Below, in pieces: positions 1,864 to 31,150 of a stretch of DNA of 64,000 nucleotides (the first letter of the stretch is position 1; each line of letters starts with the position of its first letter). This DNA comes from Oikopleura dioica. Its lineage: Eukaryota; Animalia; Chordata. A program made the translations under genes and the position numbers. The notes beneath the pieces were generated by a model that was not told the DNA's origin, ran no database searches, and saw only the letters and a list, made by a program, of their open reading frames with translations. Location: the NCBI GenBank assembly GCA_907165135.1, contig OU015567.1:15500001-15564000 (forward strand), written 5' to 3'.

Positions 1864-3730
1864 ATGGGATATGATTTGTGCCTGTTTGAGGATGAAGATG
1901 TCGACGAAGAACTGATCTGTCCTATTTGCAGAGGAGTTTTAGGTAAACTTATCACCGTTTTTTTTCTTGGTTTTATTCTGTTTCAGAGGAGGCGACTTAT
2001 GCTCCAAACTGCGAACATGCCTTCTGCAGCGACTGTATCCACGAATGGCTGGCCAACCAGCGAACCTGTCCTCTCGATCGGACGTCGCTCAAGAAAGAAG
2101 AACTCAACAGCGTGCCGAGAATCATGAAAAACATGCTTGGCAAGCTAAGGTAAGCCTTTCCTTTCCCATTTCGGAAAGCGACAGATGGGATCATTGTCCG
2201 AAACTGGCACCATGACTTCTGTCCAGCGGGGAGGCTGCATGATCATTCAGCTGTAAAATTAGTAGTCAAGCCTTTCTGCGGTCAAATTTTTGAACTTTCA
2301 ATGTTTACGATGGCTTTTTGAAAGTTTTCAGAGATTATGTTTTCACTACATCTTTACTTTTTCAGTCTGAGAATAATTCTTAAATACAACGGAGTTTCCT
2401 ACTATTACTTTTTCGCCAGGAGGTAATCTTTCAACGATGTATGCTTTATCGTCATAAATTATCACTACTTCCTCGTGAGAGTATTTACCTCCAAGACAAA
2501 CTGATGTCTGTCTGCTCAATAGAGATTTGTTTGAGCCACCCTAAGGTAGGTTAGGGCTTCATTTTCGAGATAGAGCTTGATGGACAAGGCCGGTTATAAA
2601 AAGAAAACTGACAGAAAATCGCCCATTTTTTCTTTTATCCAGGCGAGATTCAGTTGATTTAGAGAAGAGTAACAGTAGATACAGTACACTTAATAACAAT
2701 GGCTATTATGAATTTGCGGAAAAGGTTGAGGGATGGTAAACTCGTAATAATGAATCTTAGGGTCAAGTGCGAAAACAAGGAGCATGGCTGCCAAGAGATC
2801 ATCCGCCTCGACGCCAGAGCAGATCATTCAGTTAACTGCGAGTTTAATCCTAAACGGCCAATTCGATGCGAACAGTGTTGTCTCACGATACCCAAGAATG
2901 AGCTCGACAATCACAACTGTATCCGCGATTTGCGCAAGCAAAGTAAGTAGACTTCTTCATATATCGTTTCTTACAATATCGTTTCTAGTGGCGGTCATAA
3001 ACGATCAAGTAACAGAGCTGAAAAAGTACCAGACAGAACAAAAAGAACGCGACCGCGACCTGATGCTTCAAATCAACCATCTCCGCGAGCTGGTGCGACT
3101 CAACCACGCTGCCTCGCCGAGAACACCGATGCAGCCCAGAATCACCGAAATTCTCAACTGGACGGAGAGTCTTCACAGCGCCAGAGTGACCAGATGGGGT
3201 GGCGTCATTTCTACACCAGGTACGCGCTTACAGTTCGATTACGTAATAGTTACACTTTTTTTATCTTTTTAGATTCTGTGCTCCAGCGGGTCATTCGAAG
3301 AAGCCTGCTTGAGTCTGGCTGCCCAAATCATATCGTTCAAGATTTGATCGAAAACGCTCACGAGAGAAGGTGGCCCAGAGGATTGTCGACGTTAGAAACG
3401 AGGCAATTGAACAGAAGATATTACGACGATTACGTTACCAAACGAATTCCTGGAAAACAAGCAGTGGTGGTGCTGCACTGCGAGAATACACACATGCCCA
3501 TTGACATGATTTCTGGTAAGAAGCGTTTTTTATTTGACTCAAAACCTGCGTAGAAACCTGAGTCAGGCCCTGACTGTGTTTTTACCCCTAACAATCTTGG
3601 CCTGACTCAGGTTTTTACACCGGTTTTCGTCCAGTTAGACACTTATCCCAAAGACTTTCTGAAGCCTAAAAATTTCTATTTAGATCCAGGAATTGTGATG
3701 ATCTTCGCGCATGGTGTTGAAGATGTTTAA
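1864..3730 (+). CDS. RNF41: E3 ubiquitin ligase NRDP1/RNF41 (RING + TRAF-type Zn finger + USP8-binding C-terminus), multi-exon
   Basis: [41 protein letters not shown]; [18 protein letters not shown]; [25 protein letters not shown]; [17 protein letters not shown]; ends [14 protein letters not shown]. Confidence 0.93.
3535..3634. mobile_element. MITE, CTGGG family (degenerate copy 2, in last RNF41 intron)
   Basis: aacctgcgtagaaacctgagtcagg ... cctgactcaggtttttacaccggttttcgtccag inverted pair. Confidence 0.6.
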
Positions 3731-3914
3731 CCTTTCTCCCTGCGATGTCCAAAAAGAGCCTGCTTTTAACTTTAAAAAAGAAATTTACTTTAAAAATGCA
3801 ACTGGTGTTCTTCATTTCTACTGTATAAATTGTTCTTACTTTCTTCTTCTAAATATACCATTTCATCTTTTCCCGTTCAAAGCTTTTTTCTTTTATTTGA
3901 ATCATTCAGAAGAA

Positions 3915-5261
<1,347 letters not shown>

Positions 5262-5628
5262 GTTCTGACACCTTGAAAGTTCAATTATTGAAACGTTGAA
5301 AGATTACCTGGCTGAAAATGATAAATAAACACGGTGAAATCTGAATTGGAGCAATTCAATGTCAACACAGAGTCTTTGACATTGAAATTTTAATTTTATT
5401 ATTGTTCTTTTGGCAAAATAAAGCGGATCGTTCACTTTTCACTCTATTGTTCTTTTCAATTTTATCGTCTTTCCAATAAGAGGGTAAATTGTACATTTGC
5501 GTATTGACACAATGAATACGAATCAGCGCGCCGTTGACATTGCCAAGCCAAACAATGCATGGAAATGTTTATAGCTTCGAAAAACTCCTACAAACCGGCA
5601 AAAGTTGAAATTTTGAAAAAAACGAGAA

Positions 5629-7736
5629 ATGAAAGTGAGCAAACCTGACATTTTATCCGAGCAAAAAATACGAAAATGGCTGAAAACAATAAAACTCAAG
5701 AGGGAATCAACAAGGACATTAAAATGTCGCATAATTGAGTCTATTGAGAGAATGAATATGAAAAAGGACAAATTTGCACAAGAGTGGACGAGGGTCAAAC
5801 TGGTGAAAGGTATTGGACATTTATACGACAAAGATGGCACTAAACTGCAGGAGTTCACTTTCTCCCCGTATCAGAAAGAACTTTTTAACCAAGCCGCGCA
5901 GACAGATGAAATTCTCGATATTGAAAGATCCGATTTGATGCCAGAGAAGGGTTTTTGGATCAAAAAAGTACTCAAGAAGCAAATTATATCCGAAGGTGGA
6001 GAAGCTATCGTCTTTCTTGAGACTTTCAACGAGCTTGAAGTTGCCGTCCGAGTTCAAGCATTTGATCCAGCACTATTTACGTCGAATTACAAAGAGGAGT
6101 ATTATCAGTACAAGGTCAATTTGTGTTCGGATTTCTCTGCCGCTGTCGATAAAAAGACCGACGAAGAAAATGTTATTCCGTATCACGAAAATATTGTTAT
6201 GCATTATACGAATATTGAAATATTCGACAGTTTTGACATTGAGCAGAAAGACTGTTTGGGATGGATAACAATAATGGAAAAATGTGGGGCAAACTTGAGA
6301 ACAAAGCTGAAGTCTGAGAATTTAAAAATTGACAAAAGAAGGCGGATTGCATTACAAATCAAAAATGGATTTCAGTATCTGTATAATCTTGGAATCGAAC
6401 ATTGTGACTTGAAGTTGGAGAATGTTTTGGTCCAGAAGACAAAGGTTAAACTTATTGACTTTGGACTTGTGAGAGCTGTAACTGGAAAGCAAAGTTTTCG
6501 ACAGATGGGCTATGCAAGATATGGATCGAAGTTTAAAAGGATAAACAGTTTATGTACTATCAAGTTGTATTATTACTTCATAAATCTATTTTCAGATGCC
6601 GGCTCTGCGGCATTTTCAAAATCGAGTCAGCTTGTTGGGCAATCTGGCTACCTTCGAAAGAATATTTATGTATTTTTATTCTCCGATTGGATATCTGCAT
6701 GGGCCCTCTTATTTCAACCTGTTGATTGTTTGGACAAGAAACAAGTCAATCAAGCTATCAAAGTAAACTCATTTCAATGTTCATTATTCAAAAATTATTA
6801 GAAGTCCAAAGCAGAATGGATGCGCGGCTCCCGGGAACCGACAGTTGAAGAAATTAATCATACGGAAATCGTCTCGGTCAAAACTCAATGTCAGCATGCT
6901 CTCGCCGACGACAATCTACAGCGGACCATTGGCCTTTGCAATTTGAAGCATGCATTTACGAAGATCATGAATATGGATATGAAAAATTTATCGAAGAATG
7001 TTCTCGATCAAAAAGATTCAAAGCTTTGCGTTGTCGTTGCTGTGACAACTTTAGTGAAATATGCATTGGTTCATGATTTAAATTTTGAGGATAAGCGTGA
7101 CGATTTTACGACTGAAAAGATCTTTATTTTATTGACGATGACAGTCTACCCAAGAAGTCTAGCAGGATTAAATTTGAATCCAAAGAAAGAGGAGCTGCGT
7201 TATCAGTCATCTAACATTCTAAGTCTTTTAAATAGAATGAAGAACAAAACATTCTTGAACGAAAGTGGCTGGGAAATGATTCGCACAAATGCCCCTTTTA
7301 AACCTCAAAAGTCGATTTGTGATTTCGAAGAAGGTAAAGTCTTCATTAAAACTCTTTGCGTATGATGTTATTTTTAGTAATTCTCAACGAAAATTTCAAA
7401 TTTGATAGACCACTTGCAGTTCTTGGGGCGTACTTGCACAAAGACAAACCAGAAGCTGAGTTTCATCAAATGGTTCTTGACCGGGTTGAATCAAAATGTT
7501 ACGTTATTAAAAACTCTCAAATCGACATTGGAGGTGCGACTCTGAGAATTCCTATCAAAAGAGAATACTACGCACCAGAAGAATGCATGAAAAGAGCCGC
7601 ACGTCAGTGGAACAAGTATCTATGGGATTCAGATGGAAGACGAATGTATCTTGTCAATGAAAATTGCAACAATATGGGGAGGAACAAATGGTATCTTCTT
7701 CCACAAGCGTATTCTTTCAAGCTCATTCCAAGGTGA
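5629..7736 (+). CDS. Atypical protein kinase-like domain fused to C-terminal papain-like (Cys-His-Asn) peptidase domain, copy A
   Basis: Kinase motifs ISEGGEAIVF, VAVRVQ, HCDLKLEN, IDFG; then VLDQKDSKLC (Q-x5-C) and FHQMVLDRVESKCYVIKNS (H-x15-N). Exons 5629-~6550, ~6596-6760, ~6803-7333, ~7378-7736. Confidence 0.8.
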
Positions 7737-7998
7737 TTCTGGTCAACCCACTTATTGTTGAGTACGTTTCGAAAAGAAGGATTGTATTTTGCCTTTTTGT
7801 ATCTTATATATGTCTCCTCAAGGTGCGTTTCTTACTCGAGAAAATACTTCCTTCCGATAAGAAAACTGTATGAATGACTTTCAATATCAATAAACAAACT
7901 TTTAAATTGAGTCATGTGTTTGATATTAAACAAAATCACTAGCAGGCGTGGCTTTTAAAACTCAGCAATCGAACAAAGCATACAGTAGTGATACAGAG

Positions 7999-10125
7999 AT
8001 GTTCATTGAAATATGCGGTACAAAGATTTCAACATTCATTTGAAAAAAGTTAAGGTTTACTCGTTGCACTGTTGGTAGCGCGGCTCGTTCAAGTTTATGT
8101 AAAATATGAAATTTTCCATCCAGTTCCTTCGCATTCTTACCCAACAAGAAAAGACTTATACTTCCCTCTTATCAAAAAAGCAGTTGGAAAAGGGACTCTT
8201 CCGAAAATCTTTAGGCCTGAAGAATTTCCGTTTTTGCAATATAGGAATAAGGTCGTAATAAAAAATGTGCTATCTTACGCCACCTGTCGACCCATTGAAG
8301 TGGTGGAATGATTTTCGCGGACTATGATATCATAAAAGAAGCATTTGGCAAAAAAGAGTTGTCCAATCGTCTGTACTCTGAGAAGATTCAAGTGGACAAT
8401 GATCGCTTTTTGAAAGATTGGGGAATTATTGATACAGCCGAGTCAATTCTTGGAAAAGATGACAGACTAGTCAAAAACGGGGTTGGTATTTCCGAAGGCA
8501 TCGGGGACGGATACTACGACGCAACTCATCGAAGATTGCGTGTCCATTGGCATGACACAATCAAACGCCTCGTCGGGAGAAACAAGATCTCGGAAATTAT
8601 CCAGCATAGCTCAGCACAAGTCAATGCTATTCTCAAGGCAGAAGGCTCTGTTCCACAAGGAATTGACCCAAGAGAAGTCTTTGTCAATGGGTGAGGTTTA
8701 TAAAGAACTTGATTGTAATTTATCCGATAATTCTTAAACCTTAAACAAGAACGATGAATGTAGTCACAGGGTTCTCCTTAGGAATCCTCTATGATTTCGA
8801 CGATCCAGATTTCCAAGATCTTTCCCGCTACGTTTCTGTCTTCTTCGAAAACATGCGTGAGATGTACGTCTGGAAACTGCTTGTCGATAATCTTCCTGTA
8901 TGGATGACACAGAGCAAGCTCCTCACTCCATTACACAATCTGAATCCGATGAAGAAATTTGTGCCTGACTGGTGTCAATATATCTTCCGACAAATTAAAA
9001 TCCACAGGCAAAAACTTGACCCTGCCAATCCGAATGATTTTCTCGGTAATTCAACGAATTCTTCCATTTTGCTAAGCTTCAGATATACTTCTCATCGCTG
9101 CTGAAGGAGACAGCGAACTTGGATACTTTACTATTGCTTCGACAATCATTGCACTTTATCTTGGAGCGAGTGATACCCTTACGTTGGGTGTAGGGCGGCT
9201 ACGTTCGAAATTTCGAACGCCGTTCGAAAAATTTTTGAAATTGCTTATAAAAATGAGCCTATATGCGCTCCGCGCCTGATTTGTAAGAAAACTCCCTCAT
9301 AATGATGCCAACTTCCTTAACTTACACGATTACCATGATTTCAGCTCATATTTTGGTAAAGATTTTTGGGAAATTTCGAACGCCGTTCGAAAAATGGGCC
9401 CAAAACCGATTTCGAACGTAGCCGCCCGCCACCCCTTACGTTAGTGCCTAAATTCTTTTTTATAACTGGAGGTCCTTAGAAATACAATGCGCTGGATGAG
9501 CTTGACGCTTGCGGACCATCCTGAAGTGCAAGAAAAAATCTTTGAAGAAATTAACAGATCAATCGAAAAGGATGGCGAGATTATCCGAGAAAAGTGTCCC
9601 TACACACGATCCGTTTGCCTCGAAAATATGAGGTGGCATCCTGTGGTCGACACTTTGCCCCACAGAGCGACAGCCGACGTCACTGTCGCTGGAGTCAATA
9701 TTCCCAACGGAACCATTATGCAAGGTATCATTGCATATTTAATGATTCTCTTGCATTTCCTTAGCCGCACTTACTGCTGTTATGTATGACCCGAAAAACT
9801 TCCCGAATCCTGAGAAATTTATTGCGGATCGCTTTGTCGTTGATGGCGAGTTTGTCAATGATGTCAAGGTCTGTGGATTCTCTCTTGGCCTAAGAAACTG
9901 TATTGGGAAACAGCTTGCGATCGAACAATACTTCACTTACACTGCTAATATCGTTCGCGACTTCAAAATAATCAGGAACTGGTTTCTTTCAATTTGTTGA
10001 ATTCGACATTGCCTAAAAAATCGCACTAAAGAACAAGTGGAAATATGGAAATTGCGAATCACACCGCAATTCTGATGCCCGCCGAAATTAACAGAGTACG
10101 ATTTGAAAAACGACGCCCTAATTGA
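7999..10125 (+). CDS. Cytochrome P450 (clan 2-like), multi-exon
   Basis: N-terminal TM MFIEICGLLVALLVARLV; I-helix GASDTLTNTMRW; K-helix ENMR; PEKF; heme motif FSLGLRNCIG. Confidence 0.92.
9186..9434. mobile_element. MITE (249 bp) with ~26-bp TIR and 8-bp TSD at a P450 splice donor
   Basis: TIR gggtgtagggcggctacgttcgaaat / atttcgaacgtagccgcccgccaccc; perfect TSD CTTACGTT at 9178-9185 and 9435-9442; internal repeat aaatttcgaacgccgttcgaaaa twice. Confidence 0.85.
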
Positions 10126-21999: not shown

Positions 22000-22815
22000 T
22001 GTGCGGCTTGTTATTTCTTTTCTATTCAACTCTTCCCCTGTGACTCCGTTGATTTCTTGAGCCACCACGAAGAATCGATTGTATTCGCCGCCGATTTTGA
22101 ACCAGAGATAGTTCCAGCCATTTCCTCCATCTCCAACGAGCCTCGAAGCTCCTTTGAATTCTAGCTCCCATCCCTCGTTTGTGACTTTGATCTTTTGCTC
22201 GTACGAAAACTAAAACAATCAGGGACCGAAGTTCGCATTTAGTTACCTTTAAATTTATTGCATGAGCACCTAGCGAGAGTAACTTCAGGATATTGATGAG
22301 GTCCATTCCCTTCATTTCATCCCTGACGCCGCCGTAGATTGTAGATTTGTCACTCACTTCTCCGATTTTGACGAAATGGCCGACCCCTCCTTTCGGCCCT
22401 AATTTCCACAAAGCATGATCCCTTCTTTTCTCTTTTATACGTTCCTAACTGAAGGTTACCACCTAGACAGGAATTTTCAGAAATCACCTGGGCTAAATTG
22501 GGAGTAAGTCCGGACGCCCCCGATTTTCTTCGTTCCGCTTCTTTCTTCGCCTTTTCAAAGTCGAATATCTGATTGTTGCATGCATCTCTTTTCTATGCTA
22601 AAATTGGTAATAGGATTTTTGAATAATTTTACCTGGAGAAAGTCGAACGCTTCTTTGAGTTTTATGAACTTCTCTTTCGCCCTTGGATCGTTTGGGTTCT
22701 TATCAGGATGCTTCTCTTTAGCTAGTTTTCTGTACGCACTCGTTATGTCTTTCAGCGTTGCTGAAGGTTGCACGCCGAGTATTGCGTAATAATCAATGAC
22801 CGACTTGTAACTCAT
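22000..22815 (-). CDS. DnaJ/Hsp40 J-domain protein (3' extent uncertain)
   Basis: DYYAILGVQPSATLKDITSAYRKLAKEKHPDKNPNDPRAKEKFIKLKEAFDFL with HPD motif. Confidence 0.75.
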
Positions 22816-23369: not shown

Positions 23370-26300
23370 TCACATTGTTTCACATTTTAAAGGTAAACAT
23401 TTATTTCGTCTAAAAGAGGAATTTCCGGATGAATTCGAACCAAGAGAAGATGAATCTGACTCTTCTTGCGCTGGAGTAAGAGTAATCGAATATGCCTGCG
23501 GAAGAATATGCCATGTTTCCGTTTTCATGAAAAACTGTTCGTTTGTTAAAGCAAGAAACTCGTTGTTGTCTCCAATATAAACAAAATCATTGTAGTAATT
23601 ATAACAATCTTCCATTATTGCTGCAGAAGCGTAGTACGGTCGGTCAAGAGGGATTCTTATTTGAGAATCAGAATGGTCGATGAGAGTATTTTGGAGAATG
23701 AACTCGGAGTTTTCTACTCGGTCTAGCACCATTTGATGGAAAATTATGGATCCGTCGGGACTCAGATATGCACCGGTAACAAGCAGCACCAGAGTTTGAA
23801 AAACGGTAATAAATCTCGTTTTTTATTAAAAGCACATAAGAAAAATTAATGAAAAAACGCTTATTCATTTTCAAACTCTAGTCAGTGGACGGCGGAAAAC
23901 AAAGTTTTGGTGGAGGAGTACTAAATAATGGTCAGATTAAATTTTGATTTTTGTAACCTCTTTCAAAGTTAAAATCGCCTTTTGTGCTTCCATAAAAATC
24001 CATATCTTTTATAATATTCCATCCACTGTCATTCAAATAAGTTTTGAATTTCATTCTTCTGAGAAGCAATTCTATTTCATTTTCTTGAAATTCTTGTTCT
24101 TCTTTTTTCGGATTTAGATTGAAACCAGCCAAACTGCGCGGATAAATTATCATCGTAAGAAATGTGAAAATTTTTTCGAGAGTAAAATAATCTTCCATTT
24201 TTGAATCACATATTTTTAAATCATTTTTGATTGCCCATCGAATAAGCACTGAAATCGTAATGGGGACAGAGAGATTGCTTTCTTTTTGGTTTAAAACATT
24301 CTTCGTCAAGTTTTCGAAATCAAAATTCATTTGTTTTGTCATTTGACGTTTGAGATTGGCCATTGCTGAAGATTTCGACAAATTTGGATCGTCAAAGCAA
24401 AAATCAGAAGCTGCGTTTTTGAGAGAAATGATTTTTGACGTGCTTTCGATGTCTTCGATTGTGGGAGAATTTCTTGAAAGCCACCCAGCATAAGAGGCCT
24501 GAAAAATATATTTCCTACATATTAATTACATAAAAACTGACCATAAGTTCGCTTTTAATCATCTCTCTCTCAGTTTCGTCGATAGGCTTGAATAGAAGAT
24601 TCCATGCGGTCTTCCAATTGCAAAGAATCAGAATATGAAGTGGTGATTCTTCTCCTCTGGCGTTGTCACAAAGTTGCCAACTATTTGAAAAAGCAGCTGA
24701 GCCAGCATCTACAAAATACGAGATAATAATGAAAACTTAAATTTGTACTAGTACTTAAATATAGTTTTTTACGGATTTTTTGGACATTTTTTCAATTTTA
24801 AAGGGTTTTGGTGCGACATTTCTGAAAAATTCTTTATCAAATCTTTGGACATTTTTCGAGCAAAAATTTTTAGCTTCCAGGTTTCTTATAAGAAATGGCT
24901 TTTTTATTATCAAAAATCTTAATTTTTCTTTAAGAAAGACAAAATTGAAGATTTATCCCGTGCACTAAGACATATTTTTTTGTCTTTGGAGGAGTAAGGA
25001 GAAGAAGATAATCGAGCTCTTCCTGAAAAATATTTAGAATCGCACATAGAGTCGGACAATTATTTTGGGAGCGTGTATCAAATTTTTGGATATCTTTGAG
25101 AAAATCGTGCGACAAAAAAGTCCAAAGATACCATAATTAACTGTATAATGTAATGATGATATACTAGCATCATAGATAGTGAAAAAAAACTCTGAGTACT
25201 CTGCACTGACACTACTTTTAATGATGTTAATCTTTTCGAATTCAAAATCACACCATTGAATACAGTAAGACTTACAAAGATAACGCGATTTTTGATACTT
25301 GCTTCCTGATCTTGCATATCCAAGTCGGCGATAACTCTGACGCTTTGTTTGTTCTGATATCAATCCAAAATCAATGATCTTAGCCTCTCCATTTTTCAAC
25401 AAAACATTTTCTGGCTTCTTATCGAAGTGCTCGATTCCAATTTTATTAAGATAGTGAAGTCCTTCGGTTACCCCAATAAGAATCCTCTTGCGTTCTTCTA
25501 AACTAAGATCTTCATTTTTCAACCTGGAACGAAGATCTGAGTCGCATTTCTCCATCAATGTTATCCAACCAAGGCATTCTTCATGCTTCTTGTCATAGGA
25601 GGAAAAAATTTCGATATTACAAAAATTTTTTATGACATTTTGATGAAATGGGATGACCGGCTTTTCGTCTTCTTCGTCATCAGTAGCAATGTCGTAATCT
25701 TGAAAAAAGTCAATTCCAAATCGAATTTTCGATTACCTTTTGATAAATGGATAACGAATAAGAGTTTATCGTTCGTATCTGCGAACAGAGCCGAGTCAAA
25801 AGCTTGAACTCGAACAGCAACTTCAAATTCTCCAAATTTTTCGTTGAATATAATCGCTTCACCTCCAGACGAAATTATTTTTTGCTCAAAAGATTGATCC
25901 AAAATCCAGTTTCCAGTTTCTTCTTTCAATTCTGATCGGGAAATTTTGCGTCCTTCAAACCATGGATATGCGTCGAGGATCGTTTTTTGAAATGAAGTCA
26001 TCGACCATTCTTCTGTTTCAGAAAATCTTCCACGATACACTTTTCCTTTTCCATTTTCAAAAATAACGTGTTCCCATCCAGCAGACCGATAGTTCTCAAA
26101 CTGCATTCTCTCAACTGACAAAATCAATCTGTCGATATCATCTCTGCTTGTCGTTCTTCTTAATTTCAATTTAAAATCTTTGAGCCATCCTCCGATTCCT
26201 TCTTTTGTCAATTCTCTTGGATGCGTCGAGAGTTGCTCCGAGGTTTGCCCCTTTCTATTTGCGGGCGGGTGTCCATATTTTATACTCGGGTCTTTCTGGA

Positions 26301-28571
26301 ATTTTTCATCGCCTTCGTCGGAACCAAGTTTTATCGAGAACGCCGTATTCGAAATGTACCATGTTTCTTGCCTCATCTGCAAATGAGCCTGCTCGAATTC
26401 GTTTAAATATGTTCGGTCAACTGGTATTGTAACTCGGGAATAATTTTCGTACGTATTTTGCAGTACATAATTCCCACTTTGAACACTTTCAAGAGTCATT
26501 TGATGATAAAATATGTCTTTTTCGACAGGAACTCCAGCAGTTGCAGGAAGATATCCACAAGTGACTGTCAAAGGCCGATCATCAAACTGGAAACCCTTAT
26601 GCAGCGTGACTTAAAAAATAAGCGCGATTCAAATGGTTACTGAAACAAAAATCCGTTGTTATACTAGACACTTACGATATTGTACATTTTTATTAATAAA
26701 TTTAGAAACTGCCCATACAGGTCAAAATGGAAACATTATTTGCTTATTTTAAACATAGACTAAATTGCAAACAAACCTGGTTTATAATCAAAGTTCCCCT
26801 TTGCGTGTCCGATCTCAGAAATAATCTCCCATCCTCTGTTATTCAAATAGGTTTCATATTTTAGCCTGTCTAAAAGTGATGTGACCACGGTCCTTTGATT
26901 ATGAATCTCTTCTTTTCTTGGATTCAAATTAAGACCACTCAAGCTACGAGGAAAAACGACCATTGTCATAACATATAAAATATTTTCCAAGGAGTAGTAT
27001 TCGTTCATCTCTCTCGCACCCATCTTCAAATCATTTTCTAGAGCCCATCTCAATAAAATAGTAACGGAGATAGGGACACAAAGATTCGTATCCTTCTGGT
27101 CAAGAATATCAGGAGATAGATTCATAAAATTTATGTTTGTAAATCTTTTTAATTGCTGTTTTAAATTTGCCATCACGCAAGATTTCATCATATTTTCATC
27201 AGGTTCAAGATCTTGCAATTCACTTTGAAGAAAAATTATTTCTTCTACACCGTTTATATGTCTATCTTTTATGTCAGCCATCGTTGAGTGAGTATTCAGC
27301 CAGTCGGCTTTTATAGTCTTAAAATTGCTGTTTACTCATTATATTGCATAAAAAAGCCTTACAATGAGTTTATTCCGTATATCTTTTCTTATTTGTTCAT
27401 TTTTTATCGGAGCAAAGAGTAGCTTCCAGGCTGTCGGCCACCGGGATAAAATGAATGCAAAAATGCTATTGTTATTTTCACCACTTCTAGCAATAATATT
27501 TGATGTTTTGCAGAATGCAATCGTTCCTGCGTCTATGAAAAAATTGTAAGTAAATATGGAGAAAAATATTCATTCTCTTCATATTTAACTTACACAGATG
27601 ATTTCCATATCTGTACTTGCTCCCTCTTCTCGTATATCCCATCTCGCGATAACGAACTTCGTTTGAGCTCTGTTGGACAATGCCAAAATCAATAAGCTTA
27701 GGTTTTCCATTTCGAAATAAGATATTTTCCGGTTTAATATCCATATGAGCAATATTGAAGTCTTCTAAGTGACGAAGGCCAGCTTTCACTGCAATGCCGA
27801 TTTCTTTTCGTTCTTTAAGAGATAAATAGGCAAAATTTGACTTTTCATGCGCACAGAGTCTTTTTCTTAAATTTCGCTCATCACATAGCTCCATAATTGT
27901 GATCCATCCTAAGCAGTCTTTCGAATCTTCCTTGCTAAAAATTTCGATGTTCGAGTAGTGCTTGATGACATTTGCGTGAAATGGTAGACGTAGCTGGTCG
28001 TATTCTATGCAAAATTTAATAAATATTTGAGAAAAATCGGGTGAGTTCTACCTATAGACATATGAACCTTAAAATTCATTCTGTCCTCTTTCAAATCCTC
28101 CGTGAAAATTGCAGCATCAAAGGCTTGGACTCGAACCGCGTATTCTGACGTTCCGAATTTTTCTTTTAAAACAATTGCTTCACCTCCAATAGAAATTATA
28201 CTGCCACAAGAGAATTTGCGCAGATTCCATTTTCCAGTTTCCTCGTCAAGATCTGATCTTTTTATCCAATCACCACAATAACCAGGGTTCTCCTCAAGAA
28301 TCTTTTTTTGAAATTCCGTTATTTTCCATGATTCACGATCTTTTATAAAATCAACAGTTCCTTCTCCATTTTTAAAAATGACTTTATTCCATCCCGCAGC
28401 TTCTACTTTGTCGAAATCCATGCGCTCTACGGATAAAAGAAGACGATCCAAATCATCTCTGCTAGTTTCTCTCTCTAGTTTTTTTCTAAAAGAGCATAGC
28501 CATGTTTCGACATTCTCCCTCGTCAAATTCATGACTTGTGAGTTTCTTTGTTGTCGATGCCGAAAAATCAT
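23370..28571 (-). CDS. Tandem kinase-like / papain-like peptidase polyprotein (kinase C - protease C - kinase B - pseudo-protease B)
   Basis: Kinase C: ISIGGEAIVL, YAVRVQ, HMDIKPEN, IDFG. Protease C: ILDQKDTNLC, YHQMTLESVQSGNYVLQNT. ORF 25630-26571 runs without a stop from protease C into kinase B (ISSGGEAIIF, VAVRVQ, HFDKKPEN, IDFG). Protease B: VLNQKESNLS, FHQMVLDRVENSEFILQNT. Confidence 0.78.
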
Positions 28572-28710: not shown

Positions 28711-31150
28711 TCAAATAGTCATGTACAGATCAAGCGAGTCCCAGAAATCACATCGTTCTGCCCGCGGATCATCCATTTGAATTTTGAATCGTCGAGTACC
28801 TACAAGAGCTCAAGTTGTTTTGTAAACCTTCTGTGACTTTACCTTCATCGCCAATGTCAAGAAACTTATTGTTTATTTCAAAATGTTCCCAGTAAACTTG
28901 ATCTTGGTGAAAATATTCCAGTGGGTTTCCGAGATAGTCTTAGAATAATATTGAAAATAATTATTTTAAAGTTTGATTCACTGTTTGGGTCGCCAGTTCG
29001 AATGAAATTTGCGATGTACTGTTGAATGCTGTATTGAAACTTTGCATCCTCTTCGTATTTTGGGTCGCTTCGGAAGGTGTCATTGAAGAACCAGTGCTCA
29101 CTCGCTCCGTGGGAAACTCCTTCTTCGATCGATTGCCAAGGAAGACGCTGGCTAATGCGGGCCAAGTAGAGTCCAGTTTCGCGATTGTGGCTGCCGGTGG
29201 GATAGCCATCAGTCATGCATCTTTTCATATTGCAGTACCAGGTGAAATCGGTCAGCCATTCATCAGCTTTATGAATACATTCGGAACCATCTTCAGGGCA
29301 GTCGTAGTAGCCAAAGTCTTTGAGCGCTTGGAAGTCCTCGGGAGAAAGAAGCTTCGAAAAGAAGAGATCCCAGCTTTCTTGGCAAAGATGTTGAGAGTCT
29401 GGATAAGTTGTATTCGGGCAGTTTTTGCCCTGAAAAATCGGGTTCACAAACATGTATCCTTCGTTATCAGTGACGTCGATTATAGTGGGCTTGTCGTGCA
29501 TTTCTCCCTTTCGAAAGTGAAAAAATGGCATTTCCTTGAGCATGCCTGTATTGATGATGGGCGCGTAGGGTTCTGCAGCGATTGTTGGCCGGTCGAAGTT
29601 TCCAAAAGGCAGTACTTGCTTCAACTCCCAAGCTGCAGCGTTGATCTCTTTTGCCGACTTGCCCATCATACACGAGATTATTTCAGACGTCGTTGGTCCA
29701 AGACAATGAGGCAGAACACCCGCAGGAGCTTCGCAGCAATGGACAAGATTGGCGATTCCCTGCAAAATCTCTTCGCCTTCGACATTGTTGTAGAATGGAA
29801 TTCCGTTTGGACCGGAATAAGCAATTGCTTTATGGAATAAATTTCGACTATAAATAGAGTTAGTTGACCTTTATCTTCTTTTCGGGGAAAGTATGGGAAC
29901 TCAGAAGACCGTTTCAATTTTATGGGCTGTCAAATATCAAACTGCAGTTATTTGGTCAAATTCGTTCAAACTCGTTCGCCTCACATTTTGACGCATGTAA
30001 AATTACCTGCTCGGCATAACCAGATGAGCATGCATACTTTGGCCACCCGCACTCATTCCTCCGATTGTGATGCTTTCACGGTCCCCAGCAAAGAACTCAA
30101 ATGATAATCACATTTTAGGCCATTCGAGCGACTTACTTTGGCATTTTCAGCTGTCCAAATCATCGCCATTTGCTGATCCATCAATCCTTGATTTCCAGAC
30201 GTAATTTTTCCTTCATAGTATTCTAGGCCATGTTCTTGGCTAATTCTGTCATCAAGGAACTCCGAAAACAAAAATCCAAAAGCACCAAGACGATAATTTG
30301 AGCTCAACACAACTAGATTCTGTTCTGATGCAATTATGGCGCCTTCGATGGGAGAGACGTCCTGATTTGATCCACCCATGAATGCACCTCCGTGAAAGTA
30401 AAGGAAGATCTTGAGGATTTCGTTATTCTCAATGGCTCTTCTGGGGACGAAAATGTCAATGTAAGCGCAGTCTTCTGTCATGAAATCAGTCGCTTCGAAC
30501 GCGCCAGGGCAAGATGGCGAAGTCTCAGTAGCAAAGTAGACAGTCTTCCCGTCAATTATATGCGTTTTCGGGTAACCGTCAAGACCTCGCTCTATAATTG
30601 GAGCTTTCCAGCGAAGATCTCCAACTGGCGGCTTCATGAATGGAATTCCCTGCATAACAACAACATCAGGAAACTCAGTGTGAAGATAGCCCCGGATCGT
30701 TCCCAAGTCGCCGAAATCAACATCGTAGTACTCACCATCGAATGGCGGCATGGTCGATGTGGTGGTTGTCGTTGAAGTCGTAGAGGTGGTTTTTGTAGTC
30801 GTAGTGACAATTGTCTCACAATTTCCAAGCATACAGTCTGCGTAAAGTTCCCATGCGTTCTCATAGCAGAGAGCACTCAAATTTTCATCTTGAAGGTCTT
30901 GACATTTTATCTGCTCATTTATGTAGCGACTTTCGCATTGTTCCTGGCAGTGGCAGTCGTTTGAGCAATCTTTATGGTTGTCCTCGTTGCAAACTGCATT
31001 ACACTCGACGCATTCATCCAGACACGCAGCAACATCTTGAGCTACCTGCTCACATTCAAACTCGCACAGAGAAAGCTTTCCTCGAAGCCTTGATTCGACT
31101 TGAGAAAAGAGAAAAATGTCAAACAGCGCATAATCTCTTCTGAGAAGTAA
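28711..31150 (-). CDS. Type-B carboxylesterase with N-terminal Cys-rich module and Thr-rich linker (5' end uncertain)
   Basis: GIPFMKPPVGDLRWKAP, EDCAYIDIFVP, FHGGAF, NYRLGAFGFL, GNQGLMDQQ, nucleophile ITIGGMSAGG, HGASEH, YIANFIRTGDPN. Confidence 0.88.

Follow-up and report, generated by a model that had tools for sequence, protein, structure and literature searches.

A predicted papain-fold domain joined to an atypical protein kinase in a large gene family of Oikopleura dioica

We examined a 64,000-nucleotide (nt) stretch of chr2 of Oikopleura dioica OKI2018_I69 (hereafter called the window, whose positions provide the numbering used throughout), in which an earlier note had proposed that a cryptic papain-like peptidase is fused to the C-terminal side of a kinase. 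The gene in question, which we call copy A, yields a spliced model with four open exons and 660 codons that encode an N-terminal region, a kinase domain, and a C-terminal domain of ~295 amino acids. As judged from structural models of its relatives, this last domain probably adopts a divergent papain fold, and it is predicted to serve as a thiol hydrolase inside the cell. The features of copy A are as follows.

5629-6553 (+): exon 1, identified as an open reading frame (ORF), with the start codon, an N-terminal helical region of ~110 amino acids, the kinase N-lobe, the catalytic loop HCDLKLEN, and DFG
6596-6762 (+): exon 2, carrying a kinase C-lobe remnant (AGSAAF ... SDWISAWALLFQP) and a linker, with GT-AG borders and the frame kept
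6802-7333 (+): exon 3, or "Cys exon", with a conserved lead-in segment and the predicted helical (L) half of a papain fold
7009-7011 (+): Gln434, in exon 3
7027-7029 (+): Cys440, in exon 3
7378-7736 including the stop codon (+): exon 4, or "His exon", coding to 7733, with the predicted beta-barrel (R) half of a papain fold
7464-7466 (+): His571, in exon 4
7512-7514 (+): Asn587, in exon 4
7734-7736 (+): stop codon
7889-7894 (+): AATAAA, a possible polyadenylation signal read from the letters, ~150 nt past the stop codon

All three introns have GT-AG borders and are 42 nt (6554-6595), 39 nt (6763-6801), and 44 nt (7334-7377) long. The range that had first drawn attention (6820-7736) is composed of two ORFs, 6820-7365 and 7356-7736, which represent two exons around the 44-nt intron, and this intron coincides with the boundary between the predicted helical and barrel halves. 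The GT donor of exon 1 at 6554 creates a junction that matches the annotated O. dioica relative CBY13560.1 (P0007), the exon 2 segment can be aligned with the relatives P0007, P0003, and P0030, and exon 3 additionally bears the family motifs YPRSLAGLNLNP and SGW. The N-terminus of copy A (MKVSKPDILSEQKIRKW...) is hydrophilic, with no hydrophobic stretch of the kind found in signal peptides, and a Pfam search of the copy A exons gave no match to Inhibitor_I29; a kinase precedes the peptidase-like domain instead. These observations agree with the earlier proposal that both a signal peptide and an I29 prodomain are absent.

Six motif strings had been quoted from three gene copies. A six-frame motif scan of the window located all of them, in three paralogous genes.

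7000-7029 (+): VLDQKDSKLC, copy A
7464-7514 (+): HQMVLDRVESKCYVIKN, copy A
27107-27078 (-): ILDQKDTNLC, copy B
26505-26455 (-): HQMTLESVQSGNYVLQN, copy B
24297-24268 (-): VLNQKESNLS, copy C
23738-23688 (-): HQMVLDRVENSEFILQN, copy C
26218-28571 (-): copy B, a paralogue with kinase exons at ~27487-28571, the Cys exon at 26760-27281, and the His exon inside the ORF at 25630-26571
23373-25900 (-): copy C, a paralogue with kinase exons at ~25034-25900, the Cys exon at 23932-24381, and the His exon at 23373-23789

The spacings in copy A are papain-like, as had been suggested: Cys follows Gln at +6 (Gln-x5-Cys), Asn follows His at +16 (His-x15-Asn), and 131 amino acids lie between Cys and His in the spliced model, where the estimate had been about 130. 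Both the Cys and the His exons can be aligned across copies A, B, and C, and copy C carries Ser at the position where the nucleophilic Cys is expected. An origin of the motifs by chance was considered and was ruled out by their conservation across the whole family.

Two further observations concern copies B and C. The last exon of copy B reads without a stop codon into the first exon of copy C, giving a 313-amino acid open frame (25630-26571, reverse strand). Separately, the reference gene model CAG5114306.1 (P0066, Oidioi.mRNA.OKI2018_I69.chr2.g8366) splices part of copy B to a DnaJ gene at 22555-22815 on the reverse strand, bypassing copy C, and it looks like a mis-joined gene model.

A kinase domain is located directly upstream of the C-terminal domain in the same gene. 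Pfam detects Pkinase (PF00069) in exon 1 of copy A at 56.1 bits relative to a cut-off of 31.7, with coverage of profile positions 75-156 only. HCDLKLEN and IDFG are both present, and the C-lobe is shortened. The beta3 motif is VAVR, not VAIK (6040-6060, forward strand), and this substitution of Arg for the beta3 Lys recurs in 38 of 39 readable paralogues. The remaining signature residues are kept wherever they can be read, including the HxD Asp (27 of 27), the loop Lys (26 of 27), the loop Asn (25 of 26), and the DFG Asp (24 of 25). Because the residue before the catalytic Asp varies (C/F/Y/L/H), this would be a non-RD kinase. Based on these sequence comparisons, the kinase looks conserved but atypical rather than decayed.

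The same domain order extends well beyond the window. A kinase also precedes the peptidase-like domain in O. dioica proteins found in databases. Furthermore, a distant clade whose members are ~20% identical is represented on metazoan-looking marine metagenome contigs (L043:525-2157, L078:7798-9354, L079:4467-6023, and L044:403-3455), where the peptidase-like ORF follows the end of a Pkinase ORF at a distance of 30-160 nt. Members of this clade keep the Gln, Cys, His, and Asn residues, and one of them (P0077, 686 amino acids) has the order peptidase-kinase-peptidase. On a 21-kb contig from this clade, a neighbouring dystrophin-type EF-hand gene is 62% identical to that of O. dioica; the peptidase-like protein encoded there is 37% identical to its best O. 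dioica match and has no close counterpart in this species. Since the kinase-then-peptidase layout is present in a clade that lacks close O. dioica counterparts, the fusion is older than O. dioica.

The earlier note had also proposed that the kinase regulates the peptidase. This idea is pure conjecture, and the constant and ancient linkage in two clades would argue only that both domains work together. A functional analogy is offered by AvrPphB, a papain-like protease of family C58 that acts on the kinase PBS1. Both cases involve a clan CA cysteine protease whose biology is tied, or would be tied, to a protein kinase. However, AvrPphB and its kinase are separate proteins of pathogen and host, respectively, whereas here both domains reside in one animal polypeptide, and we found no sequence link or specific structural link between the two systems.

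Fold evidence was obtained from AlphaFold models of two relatives with uninterrupted sequence rather than from copy A itself. The first, L040:154-1035(-), is an intron-less paralogue that is ~40% identical to copy A, and it was modelled from a 47-row alignment. The second, P0079, is a 322-amino acid member of the distant clade that is ~20% identical, and it was modelled from a 38-row alignment. Each model was then compared exhaustively with ~48,000 PDB representatives using VIA.

The L040 model has a mean predicted local distance difference test (pLDDT) score of 74.5, with most 10-residue blocks of the core exceeding 89. Every one of its top 50 VIA matches is an enzyme of clan CA, which comprises the papain fold. 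The best of these are all members of family C1, namely xylellain (Z 8.8), Der f 1 (Z 8.5), cathepsin B (Z 8.0-8.3), and falcipain (Z 7.9). Ranks 1-14 are occupied by C1 or C1-like structures (Z 8.8-7.2), with a narrow margin over family C39 (Z 7.2). The Foldseek list for this model among PDB structures is likewise made up mostly of clan CA members (E 0.04-0.4), and the nearest ESM Atlas clusters are mostly Peptidase_C39_2, which also belongs to clan CA, with template modelling (TM) scores of 0.37-0.45 by query.

The P0079 model has a mean pLDDT of 80.3 and a predicted TM score (pTM) of 0.80. Its VIA matches include C1 enzymes at Z 13.0-10 (Der f 1, Der p 1, cathepsins C, X, and B, falcipain, and caricain), and C1 structures fill ranks 1-12 (Z 13.0-11.0). 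Most other clan CA families, among them those of staphopain, C39, streptopain, UfSP, and ATG4, reach at most 9.5, the exception being an entry named "P210 CD lyase" of unassigned family (Z 10.5). Sequence identity in the structural alignments to C1 structures is ~6-16%.

The predicted secondary structure positions the candidate catalytic residues in a similar manner in both models. Cys77 begins a helix in L040 (77-92) and in P0079 (77-96). The His is found near the start of a long strand (His198 within strand 194-206 in L040), and the Asn comes right after the next strand, as in papain. Among the PDB representatives, the best structural matches of both models are cysteine peptidases with C1 at the top, and not a non-protease fold. 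We consider the assignment of the C-terminal domain to the papain (clan CA) fold, with C1 as the nearest family, to be supported by these models.

Clan CA enzymes catalyse diverse reactions, and the domain may have the papain fold without acting as a conventional protein protease. For example, it might be a deubiquitinase or ubiquitin-like protein isopeptidase, an amidase, an acyl-transferase, or an enzyme that cuts itself, perhaps at the linker between kinase and peptidase. The clan spans all of these chemistries, and UfSP, ZUFSP, ATG4, phytochelatin synthase, pseudomurein isopeptidase, and the "CD lyase" entry all match at Z 5-10.5. The protein is cytosolic by prediction and has no prodomain, like many isopeptidases, and the strongly conserved PRSxxG...NP in the L half has no counterpart in C1. 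Moreover, the single open frame shared by copies B and C would give a self-cleaving enzyme something to cut. However, the better model is closest to C1 endo- and exopeptidases, which lead by 2-3 Z units, the Gln-x5-Cys and His-x15-Asn spacings reproduce the papain geometry, and no ubiquitin-binding or other substrate-recognition feature was identified. We therefore regard a chemistry of this kind as unlikely.

The family was also compared with C1 by sequence. When aligned by hhalign to the C1 exons of the same genome, profiles that include the Oikopleura clade give P 0.016-0.07 and a probability of ~1%, which is not significant, whereas the distant clade alone gives P 8.9e-4 and a probability of 23%, which is suggestive. 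In every optimum, the Gln, Cys, His, and Asn of the family fall on the papain columns Gln19, Cys25, His159, and Asn175, with DQxxTxLC aligned on DQGxCGSC, H on H, and KNS on KNSW. A search based on protein-language-model features returned Peptidase_C1 clusters at 0.90-0.93, and a Peptidase_C1_2 cluster was also listed. The family consensus sequences QK.s.LCVPisv and ilQNtli lack a second Cys and the Trp, whereas cathepsins of this genome have CGSCW and KNSWG.

Known papain-fold families can be compared with the domain on this basis. The C1A enzymes (PF00112), which include papain, cathepsins B, L, S, C, and X, Der p 1 and Der f 1, falcipain, and xylellain, share with it the two-lobe fold and the same order and spacing of catalytic residues. 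The family pattern DQxxxxLC(x)2(F/I)S resembles (D/N)QGxCGSCWAFS, and H(Q/A)(M/V)...(Y/F)(V/I)(I/L)(K/Q)N(S/T) resembles H(A/G)V...YWI(V)KNSWG. In contrast to C1A, the family has an extra conserved PRSxxG...NP motif and a lead-in segment, and it is predicted to be cytosolic, behind a kinase, with no propeptide, signal peptide, or disulfide cysteines. Bleomycin hydrolase and PepC (C1B, PF03051) are cytosolic papain-fold thiol peptidases that also lack a signal peptide and a classical prodomain, and they are among the structural matches. However, they score lower (Z 5.3-7.7), the family has no match to PF03051, and C1B enzymes have no kinase fusion. Likewise, the family showed neither the C1B features that form the barrel-shaped hexamer nor the C-terminal arm of those enzymes.

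Peptidases of C39 and C39-like families (PF03412 and PF13529, such as PCAT1 and ComA) are minimal clan CA domains with Gln, Cys, His, and Asp or Asn, and they are routinely fused to an ABC transporter. They supply the nearest ESM Atlas shape clusters and reach VIA Z scores of 7.2-9.2. These domains differ in being ~130-150 amino acids long, bacterial, and specific for double-glycine leader peptides, and no Pfam match to them was found here. The distance from Cys to His is 121-131 amino acids in the family as opposed to ~80 in C39. We rejected C39 as the best family because C1 scores higher structurally. Overall, we place the domain in clan CA as a C1-like member that has diverged very far and that lacks the formal marks of C1, having no profile match, no propeptide, no conserved disulfide cysteines, and no Trp after Asn-Ser.

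The window holds only a small sample of this family. A profile built from the three Cys exons yielded 136 matches in the 64-Mb genome, with E values down to 1e-91 and most of them free of internal stops. The count of three copies given in the earlier note understates the size of the family. The same profile has 82 matches among 1.84 billion representative proteins, and a full-domain profile has 58 matches among 5.8 billion proteins. All named protein matches are from O. dioica, and the others are short fragments from marine metagenomes or metatranscriptomes with no Pfam domain. The relatives CBY13560.1 (P0007) and CBY31442.1 (P0030) are known to UniProt only as "Protein kinase domain-containing protein" or "Uncharacterized protein", and a literature search found no published description of the family.

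To assess conservation, we took a census of 62 family loci from the 136 exon matches, in which the Cys and His exons were each aligned with a family profile. Of the 57 loci in which every position is readable, 48 retain the full set of Gln, Cys, His, and Asn. The losses consist of Cys to Ser in four loci (one of which also lacks the Asn), single cases of Cys to Asp, His to Asp, Asn to Ser, and Gln to Glu, and a ninth locus (L036) whose aligned exon does not contain the Gln and Cys positions and in which Arg replaces Asn. These losses are found at scattered tips of the tree and do not represent an ancestral state. Ordered by conservation, the four catalytic columns take places 7 and 25 among 166 and places 5 and 12 among 109, where mean column conservation is 0.68-0.70. 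These four positions are among the best conserved columns across paralogues. Other near-invariant features are specific to the family, including PRS..G, NLNP, GW, and a C-terminal W.LLPQAYS.

Ratios of nonsynonymous to synonymous divergence (dN/dS) were calculated by the Nei-Gojobori method, with counts pooled over aligned codons of both exons, for pairs whose synonymous divergence (dS) was 0.05-1.5. The median dN/dS is 0.255 (540 pairs). The peptidase exons of copy C have dN/dS values of 0.17-0.24 relative to its closest paralogues (73-75% identical), despite the change from Cys to Ser, and copy C does not look as though it were decaying freely. Copy A occupies a long and old branch, its identity to the sampled paralogues does not exceed 49%, and its dS is saturated. 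Judging from these sequence data, copy A is most likely an old, intact member of a large family under purifying selection.

The selection on copy C raises the prospect that the domain is a catalytically dead scaffold, or pseudo-peptidase, that provides a docking or regulatory module for the kinase, with its residues kept for structure or binding. Because copy C remains under selection without the Cys, the domain can persist without its nucleophile, and a total of nine of the 57 readable loci (copy C included) have lost one or more catalytic residues. The absence of canonical C1 features could be read in the same way. However, this proposal fits poorly with the intact residues in the other 48 loci, with the rank of the catalytic columns among the most conserved, with the retention of these residues in the distant clade at ~20% identity, and with the restriction of losses to scattered tips. 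A dead scaffold is accordingly the least probable of the explanations that we weighed.

Several aspects of family organization were also evident. Copies are strongly clustered, for example on the genome sequences labelled C1 (5.49-5.97 Mb and 15.4-16.6 Mb) and C2 (11.6-12.7 Mb), where these labels do not refer to peptidase families. Among the matches listed, all are on C1, C2, C4, C5, or two small contigs, and none is on C3. At several family loci, an open frame continues across the position of the intron. One locus, L036:1968-3755 (+), which corresponds to C4:807251-809038, is a 596-amino acid open frame that encodes a degenerate peptidase domain, then an N-terminal region, and then a kinase. 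Besides copies B and C, this locus offers another case in which two family members are fused head to tail.

Taken together, these findings lead us to favour the view that the C-terminal ~296 residues of copy A (6802-7736) form a divergent papain-fold domain that acts as an intracellular thiol hydrolase alongside the kinase, and we hold this to be probable on the strength of the modelled relatives. The Cys exon would form the helical half, in which Gln434 would contribute to the oxyanion hole and Cys440 would be the nucleophile at the start of a helix. The His exon would form the beta-barrel half, with His571 as the general base and Asn587 as the residue that orients it. This domain is permanently fused behind an atypical kinase in which the HxD...N loop and DFG are intact, Arg replaces the beta3 Lys, and the C-lobe is shortened. 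The predicted hydrolase could be a peptidase or an isopeptidase, and it would operate inside the cell with the kinase on the same polypeptide. What the analysis itself establishes is the gene structure, the fold class of the relatives, the conservation of residues, the selection, the fusion, and the size of the family, while catalysis, the type of substrate, and any coupling of kinase and peptidase are predictions.

A number of results weigh against this interpretation. The fold is derived from models of relatives, with copy A placed by kinship, and the closeness of Cys, His, and Asn would follow from their positions in the secondary structure and from the alignment to C1 profiles. Foldseek found no PDB match at E <= 0.001 for either model, and so its lists were used only as a measure of enrichment. 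The top Z score of the L040 model (8.8) barely exceeds the level that is typical of unmatched models. When exons 3 and 4 of copy A were predicted as two chains without alignments, as a trial of whether the halves dock into one papain fold, the resulting score was 0.00 and the partner pLDDT was below 50, which counts neither in favour of the fold nor against it.

Sequence searches were equally unrewarding. In Pfam, the peptidase-like domain was unmatched up to E 1 for the copy A exons and eight relatives, with only the kinase being found. NCBIfam offered nothing relevant for this domain, and sequence and profile searches of the PDB (A1, A2, and A3) returned only chance matches (E 0.39-1.4). The domain is therefore unannotated, as had been claimed. 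A search of the whole genome with PF00112 recovered 20 cathepsin exon matches, none of which is from this family. Moreover, the signal peptide, I29 propeptide, disulfide cysteines, and Trp of NSW that are typical of C1 are all missing. The partner domain raises a comparable concern, as a kinase that lacks the beta3 Lys may be a pseudokinase.

RNA data were also inspected. Three oligo-dT RNA sequencing runs labelled as O. dioica gave zero reads on 5400-8000, although no positive control accompanied them and the portion covered was ~56-59% per run, so that the zero count does not serve as a measure of expression. The sole RNA match is a 200-nt contig from an oligo-dT marine plankton metatranscriptome that aligns to 7492-7692 in the His exon. 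This contig has a depth of 2 and differs by two changed letters and a 1-nt deletion at 7587, and it could stem from variation within the population, from a close paralogue, or from a fault in the assembly.

The lack of reads is what would be expected if copy A were a silent or decaying locus that makes no protein, even though the family is real. However, the metatranscriptome contig (two changes and one gap in 200 nt) would speak for some transcription, and the limits of the RNA runs reduce the force of their result. Furthermore, the locus has four open exons separated by three GT-AG introns of 39-44 nt, and its dS is saturated relative to every sampled paralogue, yet it keeps the four catalytic residues and the family motifs. 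A long-dead copy would hardly be expected to have open exons and good splice sites or to retain its motifs at saturated dS. We view silence of this one locus as doubtful, while granting it somewhat more weight than the use of a different chemistry.

Several other genes with Pfam matches accompany the three copies in the window.

3700-5100 (+): ferrochelatase
8070-10000 (+): cytochrome P450
22555-22815 (-): DnaJ-domain gene
28878-29765 (-): carboxylesterase-family gene

Ferrochelatase, copy A, and cytochrome P450 share one strand and are separated by short gaps, an order that would fit an operon-like arrangement.

Each of the two enzyme classes, papain-fold peptidases and protein kinases, is familiar from textbooks. 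Regardless, we found no described case in which a cytosolic papain-fold peptidase is fused to a protein kinase in one animal protein, and the domain has no sequence-detectable relative in Pfam, NCBIfam, or PDB. One can imagine a new intracellular signalling enzyme of a chordate lineage in which an atypical kinase and a C1-like peptidase constitute a single-polypeptide switch, where phosphorylation gates cleavage or cleavage frees the kinase. The expansion to at least ~60 sampled, fast-diverging copies might then reflect a role in an arms race, such as in innate defence or gamete function. We consider this scenario speculative and rather improbable, somewhat more so than an alternative chemistry.

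The copy A locus is in itself modest news, as it adds one more old and intact member to the family. The family as a whole reveals a blind spot in annotation, where its proteins carry labels such as "uncharacterized" or merely "protein kinase domain-containing" and the gene model in the window mis-joins copy B to a DnaJ gene. The Oikopleura genome is among the most compact in animals, and the maintenance of so large a family (136 exon matches) under purifying selection in such a genome points to real, unexamined biology. If the peptidase is active, clan CA would gain a new family and the architecture of the enzyme would also be new, and both would be open to study with standard probes.

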